Source of the DNA: Octopus sinensis
Taxonomy: Eukaryota
Assembly: GCF_006345805.1 (NCBI RefSeq)
Contig: NC_043010.1
Coordinates: 50,344,001 to 50,408,000, forward strand
DNA: 64,000 nt
Direction of reading: 5' to 3'
In this document: positions 27,401-30,400 of the stretch, in pieces
Layout: every line of letters starts with the position of its first letter
Numbering within the stretch: the first letter of the stretch is position 1
The notes under the pieces: model-generated
The model's database searches: none
What the model was told of the DNA's origin: nothing
Seen by the model: the letters and a program-made list of their open reading frames with translations, nothing else
Position numbers and translations under genes: made by a program

Positions 27401-30400
27401 CCTGCTATAAAAAAGTCATATTTCGGGCTCTCTTGGAGGTGTGGTGCCATTTTTTCTTGACCACTGCTGCTACTAGAATCGCTTGCTGGAAATAAAACAG
27501 ATTTTTGTACTAAATTTTTTCTTGACCACTGCTGCTACTAGAATCACTTGCTGGGAATAAAACAGATTTTTGTACTAAATTTTTTCTTGACCACTGCTGC
27601 TACTAGAATCACTTGCTGAAAATAAAACAGATTTTTGTACTAAATTTTTTCTTGACCACTGCTGCTACTAGAATCGCTTGCTGGAAATAAAACAGATTTT
27701 TGTACTAAATTTTTTCTTGACCACTGCTGCTACTAGAATCACTTGCTGGGAATAAAACAGATTTTTGTACTAAATTTTTTCTTGACCACTGCTGCTACTA
27801 GAATCGCTTGCTGGAAATAAAACAGATTTTTGTACTAAATAACTGGTATTTATTTAATCGACCCTGAAAGGATGAAAGGCAAAGTCGACCTTGGCAGAAT
27901 TTGAACTCAGAATGTAGCAGCAGACAAAATACCGCTAAGCATTTCGCCCAGCGTGCTAACGATTCTGCCAGCTCGCCACCCTGAACAGCACCTATACCAG
28001 TGCCACATAAAAAGGCCCTTGCTGGTGCGATGTAAAATGTGCCTAGCATACTCTATAAAATGGTTGGCATTAGGAAGGGAATCTAGCCATAGAAACCAAG
28101 CCAAATCAGACTGGAACCTTGTTGACAATTCTCCTGCTGGTCAAACTGTCCAACCCATTCCAGTATCGAAAATGGATGTTAAATGATAATGATGATAATG
28201 GCTGCTTGGTGACAAAAAGCCAAAAAGCAATACATATAGAAAGAAAAATATTAAAAAAATTTTTTTAAATAAACTCTTTTTAACTACCTTTCGAATGCGC
28301 TGTAGACACAGATGATAGATTATCAAGCTTGGGTAACTCTTTTGCAGGGATCTTAGCAACATCACGTGGGCATATGTAGTGCAATATCTTTGAAGACATT
28401 TGATACCACATGGCAATATTCTGACAGTAGAGGCAGTTGATAGACTGGTGTTCCTCGCTGCATGTATGTGTGCCATCCCATGGCCCATCGAGGGTTGTTG
28501 ACAGGAGATGCATCAGCTGTTGACTTGTCTCATTATAAATTCCTAGATTTCGTGGAGTTTCTTGTAATTCCAGCTATGCAAATGATGATTGGGGGGAAAA
28601 AAAGTAGAAAGAAAAACAATTTACATATATACACATACTTATATATATATACATACATATATACACATACATACATACACATACATCTATACACATACAT
28701 AAATGCACATGCATATACATATATATACACATCAATAAATACTTGCCATTACATCTTTAATCAACCAAATATGAACCATTTTGTTGCACAATGCGTCTCC
28801 ATCTTTCCTTAACTTGAATATACCCTCCTCCAAGAATTGAGGTGGTTTCATGGCAAAGAATTCATCAAGGTATCTTTTTACGGCATCCAAGGAATAGAAA
28901 TATTTGCCCTTAAGACTATTCTGCAGAGACCTGAATAAGACCTGAATCAGGCATTTGCCATATTCTGAATGCCTTACTTCCCTGGGCATGGACACATTGA
29001 AACTCCGACGTCTGGCAGCTGACTTGGCAGACACCCATAAAATTATCAACCATCTTACAAACAATAACTCTGAGCACCTTTTCAAACTCCACCTGTCTAA
29101 CACCTGTGGACAAATTTACAAAGTCAGAAAACAGCACAGCTCCCATGACTTTCAGAAACATTTTTTCATGCTAAGAGTTGCTGAAGCATGGAACAGACTG
29201 CCGGCATCAGTTGTTAGTTGTCAGAGCACTGCATCCTTCAAAACTTCCATGCTTTCTGAGATTCGCCAACACTACACCTGATTTTCTCCCATCCATACAC
29301 ACGCAAGCATGTATCTGACTCATACACCGTTTGCTTTCCAGACATTTGTACATTACTGCACATTTGTACATTACTTTATATGCACTTTTTGACAAGTTGT
29401 GGTGCACCCGAGCACTGTATACAATAATTTCATTATATATTATATAAGTGGAAATCTAAAGGAGCAATATCTGGTGAATATGGAACGTGGGGTAACACAT
29501 CCCAGCTGAGCTGCAGCAATTTTTGTCTGGTTCCCAAAGCATCAACTGCTGAAAATGAACTTTCTCATCTTCCATTTTAAAGGGTTACAGAATTAACACA
29601 GGTTATAGGAACATAAACCTTCTTCCACGAAAAGATAGCTTAAACTGTGCTCTAAATGGAGGTGTAGTCAAATCCTATTTTATGGACTCAACGATGTTCT
29701 AAAATAAGTTGAAAGGTAAGCTAATATAAATCGGCATGAACTTTCTAGACAACCCAATATATACACATACACACACAGGGGACAAACACTGGCATAAAGA
29801 TACACACACACATAGATATATACATATATAAATGATGATGATGTATGTATATGTATGTATGTGTGTGTCCTTGTGTCAGTGTTTGTCCTCCACCACTACT
29901 TGACAACTGGTGTCGGTGTGTTTACATCTCTGTAACTCAACGATTTTGCAAAAGACAGCGACAGAATAAGTGTCAGACTGAAATAAAATAAGTACTGCGG
30001 TTGATTCGTTCAACTAAAATATCTTCAAGGCGGTGCCCCAGCATGGCCGCAGTCTAATGACTGAAACAAGTAAAAGATAAAAGAAAGCTAAGCAAACCTG
30101 TTTCAAGAGAATGTCTAACATCATAAGGAAGCAGGGTAGATGCAATTCTGTCTCTCGTTCGAATAAGTCAACAGTCTCATTCATGGTTTTGGACCTCTCA
30201 GGACTAAATTGGGGTAAGTATTCTTCGACAGGGGAAGCAGGTGACAGTAGTGACTGAGAGGCCAGGTCTCTTCCAGAGGATGCTTTAGAAGGATCAGAAC
30301 GATGAAGGAATTCTACACCATTTTTGAACATTTTCAGGAGCAGATGAATCGGAATAATGATGTCCAAGGAAGACAATACCTGTAAAAATTGAAAACAAAA

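Follow-up and report, generated by a model that had tools for sequence, protein, structure and literature searches.

The 64,000-nucleotide (nt) stretch of Octopus sinensis DNA analysed here (contig NC_043010.1, forward-strand positions 50,344,001 to 50,408,000; hereafter the window, in whose own coordinates positions are given) carries the gene for UNC79, a core subunit of the NALCN leak-channel complex, and the boundary between intron 19 and exon 20 of this gene is repeated six times in tandem as a 65-bp unit. Each unit joins the end of the intron to the beginning of the exon, and with it the 3' splice site is present six times. The last of the six acceptors in gene order is the only one from which the reading frame stays open; the five upstream acceptors, referred to here as decoys, all lead to a premature stop codon. 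The intron itself is ancestral and the array is young. We consider it moderately probable that this is a minisatellite of the kind described in amphioxus as a mirage, young and specific to its lineage, whose decoys are largely or entirely silent and whose extra copies are a tolerated by-product. Minisatellites that span a splice junction are an already described, little-known kind of element, and no new mechanism is needed here.

Results

UNC79 gene model and reading frame

Eight consecutive exons on the minus strand, all bounded by AG and GT, splice into a single open reading frame (ORF) of 464 amino acids, the product of which matches human UNC79 with an E value of 1.1e-94 (PDB chain 7sx3_D from the NALCN channel complex structure, residues 521-1020). 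Since Pfam gave no match for the peptide encoded by exons 18-21, the identity of the gene was taken from the UNC79 chains in the PDB. The exon numbers 19, 20 and 21 were adopted from an earlier note on this DNA (the first-pass annotation), and the exons of the eight-exon model range from 89 to 286 nt. The elements needed below are as follows, a slash marking the splice junction.

32398-32310, 31203-31080, 30379-30098, 28573-28288, 27485-27361, 26331-26183, 24312-24155 and 23623-23443, minus strand: the eight UNC79 exons, with AG...GT borders
28288..28573, minus strand: exon 19, 286 nt, last base 28288, phase 1, donor AAG/GTAGTT
27486..28287, minus strand: intron 19, 802 nt, of which the five decoy units make up 325 nt
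27361..27485, minus strand: exon 20, 125 nt, donor CAG/GTGAGA
26183..26331, minus strand: exon 21, which served as a check of frame continuity

When exon 19 was joined in silico to each of the six acceptors, the frame was open via the acceptor at 27485 only, and the five upstream acceptors each read ...GQEKI followed by a stop, 13 codons past the junction with exon 19. The first-pass annotation had named the gene UNC79 and had held that five of the acceptors give an in-frame premature stop, with 27485 alone open; the first claim is borne out by the match to the human UNC79 chains and the second by the splicing in silico. Translation straight through the array was considered as a candidate and ruled out, as the 65-bp period is not divisible by 3 and in-frame stops occur in each unit. 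In the alignment with human UNC79, the Ser-rich start of exon 20 falls in a poorly aligned, gap-rich stretch.

Architecture of the array

Tandem Repeats Finder (TRF) describes the array as 6.0 copies of a 65-bp period at 27449-27840, with 96% matches, no indels and a score of 742, which is far beyond chance. Among the 175 TRF rows obtained for the 64 kb, it is the single tandem repeat that combines a period of at least 25 with high sequence complexity. On the minus (gene) strand the unit reads ATTTAGTACAAAAATCTGTTTTATTTCCAG/CAAGCGATTCTAGTAGCAGCAGTGGTCAAGAAAAA, in which 28 nt of the intron-19 tail, ending in CAG, are followed by 37 nt identical to the head of exon 20. The units and the array as a whole are listed in gene order.

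27449..27840, minus strand: whole array, 65 bp x 6 (TRF, repeat search, unit listing)
27776..27840, minus strand: unit 1, type A (TTTCCAG/CAAGCG), decoy acceptor, first base after the AG 27810, stop 13 codons past the junction
27711..27775, minus strand: unit 2, type B (TTCCCAG/CAAGTG), decoy acceptor, first base 27745
27646..27710, minus strand: unit 3, type A, decoy acceptor, first base 27680
27581..27645, minus strand: unit 4, type C (TTTTCAG/CAAGTG), decoy acceptor, first base 27615
27516..27580, minus strand: unit 5, type B, decoy acceptor, first base 27550
27451..27515, minus strand: unit 6, type A, authentic acceptor, first exonic base 27485, the sole copy with an open frame
27449-27450, minus strand: extra AT beyond the six units, a microhomology common to both edges of the array

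The units are 97-100% identical to one another and differ in three columns only, all of them transitions (-5 T/C, -4 C/T and +5 C/T); the +5 variant lies at a CpG and is synonymous (AGC/AGT). The unit types run A-B-A-C-B-A in gene order, or 1=4=6, 2=5 and 3 unique in plus-strand order, and a repeat search within the array found a higher-order register of three units (195 nt) with 97-99% identity. To produce this pattern, several rounds of duplication and a minimum of three point mutations are required. Unit 6 is the sole copy that is contiguous with the remainder of exon 20. In all of this, the first-pass annotation was accurate: the six acceptor copies, the division of the unit into 28 and 37 nt, the exon starts and the variant pattern were all recovered by TRF and the unit listing, and its preference for a real, evolving variable number tandem repeat (VNTR) over an assembly stutter is favoured by the three variant types and the 195-nt register.

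No further occurrence of the unit was found elsewhere in the window by blastn, and the idea that the array is part of a transposon was ruled out on the same ground, the unit being confined to a single locus within the window. Elsewhere in the window, the strong tandem repeats are all micro- or minisatellites of low complexity with TA, TG, AGA, ATAC and ATG motifs, several of which lie inside UNC79 introns near exons, e.g. at 22163-22517 and 23031-23347.

Splice signals in the copies

The CAG is kept in six of six copies, each of which has a pyrimidine fraction of 0.65 between -20 and -3; the eight real acceptors of UNC79 span 0.53-0.88, a range that includes the array copies. An A-rich, likely branch-point region, TACAAAAAT, is found at -17 to -23 in each decoy. 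The first AG past the branch point is, as a rule, the one that is used. As the nearest AG upstream of each CAG belongs to TTTAG at -26/-25, the branch point must lie within TACAAAAATCTG (-23 to -17), that is, inside the unit. Judged by these motifs, every copy is a full 3' splice-site module with a branch-point region, a pyrimidine tract and a CAG. Masking of the decoys by RNA structure was also considered and ruled out: the minimum free energy of the array pre-mRNA is -60 kcal/mol versus -89.5 for shuffles (z=+5.3), i.e. the array folds worse than they do. The features that distinguish the authentic copy all lie at least 38 nt downstream of its acceptor, and consist of the remaining 88 nt of the exon and the donor CAG/GTGAGA, which ranks strongest among the eight donors scored with an approximate matrix.

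Each unit also contains one GT downstream of its AG that would keep the frame, within the sequence GTG/GTCAAG, and this is the sole such GT in the unit. It recurs every 65 nt, with the G of the GT at 27786, 27721, 27656, 27591, 27526 and 27461.

27781..27789, minus strand: candidate cryptic donor GTG/GTCAAG of unit 1, -2.6 bits

This score, from the same approximate matrix, places GTG/GTCAAG at the 70th percentile of the 3,764 GTs on the gene strand, about 30% of which are as good or better, whereas the eight real UNC79 donors lie at the 91st-99.8th percentile. It lacks both a purine at +3 and a G at +5.

Ancestry and age of the boundary

A search with exons 18-21 gave one relative, P0001, a distant 167-amino-acid ORF. 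Its locus, L001, belongs to a eukaryotic contig of 2.87 Mb from an ENA assembly and carries the orthologous exons 18-21. The protein database search with these exons returned no close relative and no transcript-derived protein, exact-sequence look-ups of the two window ORFs adjoining the array found nothing on record, and metagenome scans for the exonic part of the unit and for UNC79 relatives found no other copy of the locus.

In L001, exon 19 ends AAAGAAG/GTAAGG in phase 1 and exon 20 starts ttttcAG/CTGATGGTCATGAACAG, encoding A-D-G-H-E-Q, the counterpart of which in the window is A-S-D-S5-G-Q-E-K. The position and phase of intron 19 are identical in the two genes, and in L001 intron 19 is free of tandem repeats, with one acceptor only. 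Since position and phase are shared and the relative has one acceptor, the intron position is old, the acceptor within the unit is ancestral and the array is derived. From this comparison, the array is a young, lineage-specific gain. Copies of the neighbouring dispersed repeat in the window are 79-84% identical (blastn), and, given that the units of the array differ in only three columns, the array is much younger than these repeats.

27841..27980, minus strand: dispersed repeat resembling a short interspersed element (SINE-like), in sense orientation to the gene, about 140 nt, within intron 19 (blastn, alignment)

The two edges of the array share AT alone, with ...CCAGTTAT/TTAGTAC upstream and ...AAAAAAT/GGCACC downstream (here the slash marks the edge), and a shared edge of 2 nt suggests slippage or end-joining with minimal homology. 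The SINE-like repeat, other copies of which lie at 7626-7767 and 39800-39939, breaks off in intron 19 with ...TACCAGTTAT, precisely where the array has its upstream edge; past that point the two other copies run on with AGCACTGGGGTC..GTAA..GACTTA. The truncation and the array edge thus coincide, be it through one complex event or by chance. ARAGORN and Rfam gave no match in either the SINE-like repeat or the array, and a tRNA-derived origin is not supported.

Junction-spanning arrays in the related locus

UNC79 of L001 has junction-spanning arrays of its own, at two other exon borders. One, at L001 2618-3074, comprises 3.7 copies of a 124-bp unit with 96% matches, the unit being made of the last 81 nt of an exon, the donor CAG/GTTAGT and 43 nt of intron. 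Immediately upstream, 2500-2617 contains two copies of the acceptor of this exon with its first ~40 nt; the orthologous exon in the window (31203-31080) is single copy. The other, at 15865-20504, contains at least 31 tandem copies, mostly of 132 nt and some of 125, 134 or 163 nt, and runs off the end of the locus. Its 132-nt unit consists of ctgtatctttcAG/ followed by ~112 nt of the next UNC79 exon and amounts to 44 codons that are open in the frame of the exon, with a 377-residue ORF at 17858-18991; here too the window ortholog (22731 downward, minus strand) is single copy.

Minisatellites abound in L001, and under a model of uniformly placed seeds ~1.2 junction-spanning arrays are expected there, so that the two seen are no excess. 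For the window, the same model gives 0.02-0.04 expected for one 65-bp seed on a junction, a post hoc figure for a single case. The counts from the window and from L001 do not show a junction-linked mechanism. Taken together, the two loci suggest that mirages are not limited to amphioxus.

Other features of the gene

Several further observations concern the surroundings of the array. An internal candidate acceptor, ttttttatAG/CAGGCATGCC (27404-27406, minus strand), lies 81 nt into exon 20 and in frame, and its use would drop 27 residues including the whole Ser-rich start, thereby skipping the coding contribution of the array.

27361..27404, minus strand: candidate short form of exon 20 from the internal acceptor ttttttatAG/CAGGCATG

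The donor of exon 18, CAG/GTTTGC, is the second-weakest of the eight scored. The introns after exons 18 and 20 share one dispersed repeat (…CTTGTTTCAGTCATT[AT]GACTGC[GA]GCCA[TG]GCTGG…; ~30040-30095 and ~27250-27300, minus strand), which sits ~20-80 nt from the donor in question. Stop-free stretches in intron 18 (28732-29600, minus strand) were considered as a decayed mariner-type transposase; the idea was dropped when Pfam gave no match, and they are probably junk ORFs.

Discussion

The array matches a known kind of structure in every feature tested. In the amphioxus globin gene BflGb6, the 3' end of an intron, together with exon 2's 5' portion, is repeated 6 and 3 times in two haplotypes (PMC3087553 section 16; PMC3902484), with units 81-100% identical and regular splicing by reverse transcription PCR (RT-PCR) (PMC3087553, PMC3902484); Adh3, TnC and PGBD5 of amphioxus behave in the same way (PMC3087553, PMC3902484). 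As in these mirages, the window has a handful of head-to-tail units made of an intron end and an exon start, the copies keep the splice signals, and the authentic copy lies at the edge of the array beside the rest of the exon. The differences are that the mirages were described in amphioxus animals, from which the window, whose dispersed repeats seem cephalopod-like, does not come, and that its unit is 65 bp long versus 150-160 bp in the globins and 10-72 bp in Adh3. For the mirages, polymorphism, somatic instability and normal splicing have been demonstrated.

A second group of relatives is found among human minisatellites whose first monomer lies across an exon-intron boundary, namely the 37-bp VNTR in F7 IVS7 and those of IFI6, CBS IVS13, LMNB2 and PDGF (PMC1557585). 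The authentic site alone is used in F7 IVS7, LMNB2 and PDGF and the nearest ones in IFI6 and CBS, and the pseudo-donors of F7 IVS7 are functional when tested and normally silent (PMC1557585). These VNTRs likewise reiterate an authentic splice site as identical intronic copies. They are donor-side arrays with the authentic site first, whereas the window array is acceptor-side with the authentic site last, a mirror image; with this order, the decoys would be the first sites encountered in a simple 5'-to-3' scan.

The steps that may have led to the array can be sketched as follows. A 65-bp piece across the ancestral intron-19/exon-20 boundary would have been duplicated in tandem, with a 2-nt AT microhomology at the edges, and further slippage or unequal exchange, probably including one step of three units (195 nt), would have brought the array to six units. 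Since the duplication would have run upstream, the 3'-most copy would have stayed joined to the exon as the authentic acceptor, and the five copies upstream of it would have turned into intronic decoys. In exon definition, splice sites are paired across the exon (PMC3488318), and we invoke it as the likely reason for decoy silence in a gene with kilobase introns and exons of 89-286 nt; the strong donor at 27361/27360 should choose the nearest upstream acceptor and yield the 125-nt exon. The choice of a decoy would instead make exons of 190-450 nt, and any such use would end at a stop codon, probably followed by nonsense-mediated mRNA decay (NMD). We therefore infer that the decoys are mostly silent and that the array is a by-product of minisatellite turnover, not a regulator.

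Several points weigh against decoy silence, which, like the copy number, is inferred. Decoy exons of 190 and 255 nt would still fall within the size range of UNC79 exons (89-286 nt). If splicing proceeded by 5'-to-3' scanning or on a first-come-first-served basis, unit 1 would be the acceptor chosen, which would make the allele hypomorphic. Loss of UNC79 is viable in flies and worms, and hence a weakened allele could persist. Experiments on duplicated globin acceptors found the proximal copy to be used, and another group reported the opposite (PMC1557585, Discussion); the pseudo-sites beside the authentic one in IFI6 and CBS are used constitutively (PMC1557585, Introduction).

In a rival account, which we regard as unlikely, the upstream acceptors would be used to an appreciable extent and the resulting premature-stop transcripts removed by NMD. 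In its favour, the five decoys are intact acceptors that equal the authentic one in quality, RNA structure does not hide them, and the stop, 13 codons past the junction, lies far upstream of later exon junctions; furthermore, the upstream copy was favoured in some duplicated-acceptor experiments, and neighbouring pseudo-sites are used in IFI6 and CBS (PMC1557585). Nevertheless, the boundary minisatellites examined by RT-PCR, acceptor- and donor-side alike, mostly splice normally (PMC3087553, PMC3902484, PMC1557585). The tuning of functional UNC79 dose by unit number through NMD, an idea of the first-pass annotation, is unsupported; as an adaptive 'dose dial' it is much less likely than leakage itself, and an adaptive role is one more assumption beyond leakage. 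NMD-coupled poison exons and splice sites, such as those in SR-protein genes, are under regulation and deeply conserved. The array resembles them in that the use of an alternative site brings a premature stop, but it is young, lineage-specific and composed of near-identical copies, and the alternative event is absent from the distant L001, the sole orthologue compared. It is very improbable, in our assessment, that the array was made or inflated by the assembler and that the true unit number is one or some other figure. Copy-number errors are common at tandem repeats in assemblies, but stutter would not yield non-identical units of three types in the order A-B-A-C-B-A with a 195-nt register, the differences are all transitions, one at a CpG, as real mutation would give, and a like architecture is documented in resequenced amphioxus loci (PMC3902484).

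The least credence of all is given to the birth of an intron or exon, in which each unit would supply a 24-nt micro-exon (ASDSSSSS) through GTG/GTCAAG and its remainder would become a new intron, with a junction ...CAGCAGTG/CAAGYGATT.... The first-pass annotation had put forward an in-frame micro-exon of eight codons with a donor 24 nt past the AG, and the arithmetic of this proposal stands: 24 nt keep the frame, and the insertion point lies in a poorly conserved, gap-rich stretch of the human UNC79 alignment. The donor, at the 70th percentile, is weak, and splicing between neighbouring units would remove an intron of 41 nt. Such a length is at or under the usual lower limit for animal introns. 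The same annotation had seen a match to intron gain by tandem duplication of splice sites, which fails, as AGGT is absent from the unit and L001 shows the intron to be ancestral. Intron gain of the Rogers type needs a duplicated exonic AG/GT proto-splice site (PMC2891723, PMC3265369, PMC4974935), and yields a new intron equal in length to the duplication, with its donor from the upstream copy and its acceptor from the downstream one. The window shares with it a short tandem genomic duplication that multiplies splice signals within a gene, but what was duplicated is a pre-existing acceptor without any competent donor. A route from mirage to new exon was nevertheless proposed for the amphioxus globins (PMC3087553, Fig. 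7 text), and the authors on mirages have already suggested them as a possible source of new exons and introns (PMC3087553, PMC3902484).

Returning to a mirage-type minisatellite with largely silent decoys, the array offers a clean natural test of 3' splice-site choice, in which six modules of branch point, pyrimidine tract and AG are set 65 nt apart and the last is correct; donor-side arrays such as that of F7 have been dissected, whereas acceptor-side ones have hardly been studied. It also has a practical side, since a gene predictor or spliced aligner that chose another copy would call UNC79 truncated, and short junction reads tell the copies apart only if they reach at least 38 nt into the exon. 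A wider version would hold that boundary-spanning minisatellites are commoner than chance at splice junctions in several invertebrate phyla, which, if true, would point to an unrecognised junction-linked duplication process; it is raised because the sole complex minisatellite of the window lies on a junction and UNC79 of L001 carries at least two more. As for the animal itself, it is quite improbable that a polymorphic decoy-acceptor VNTR serves as an inherited dial that sets UNC79 and, through it, the dose of the NALCN complex in the nervous system. If it did, every unit added would send a share of transcripts to NMD by way of a premature stop, and the in-frame Ser-rich micro-exon would now and then be included. 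Should the decoys leak, a change in copy number would shift the dose of UNC79 as a core subunit in the NALCN leak-channel complex.

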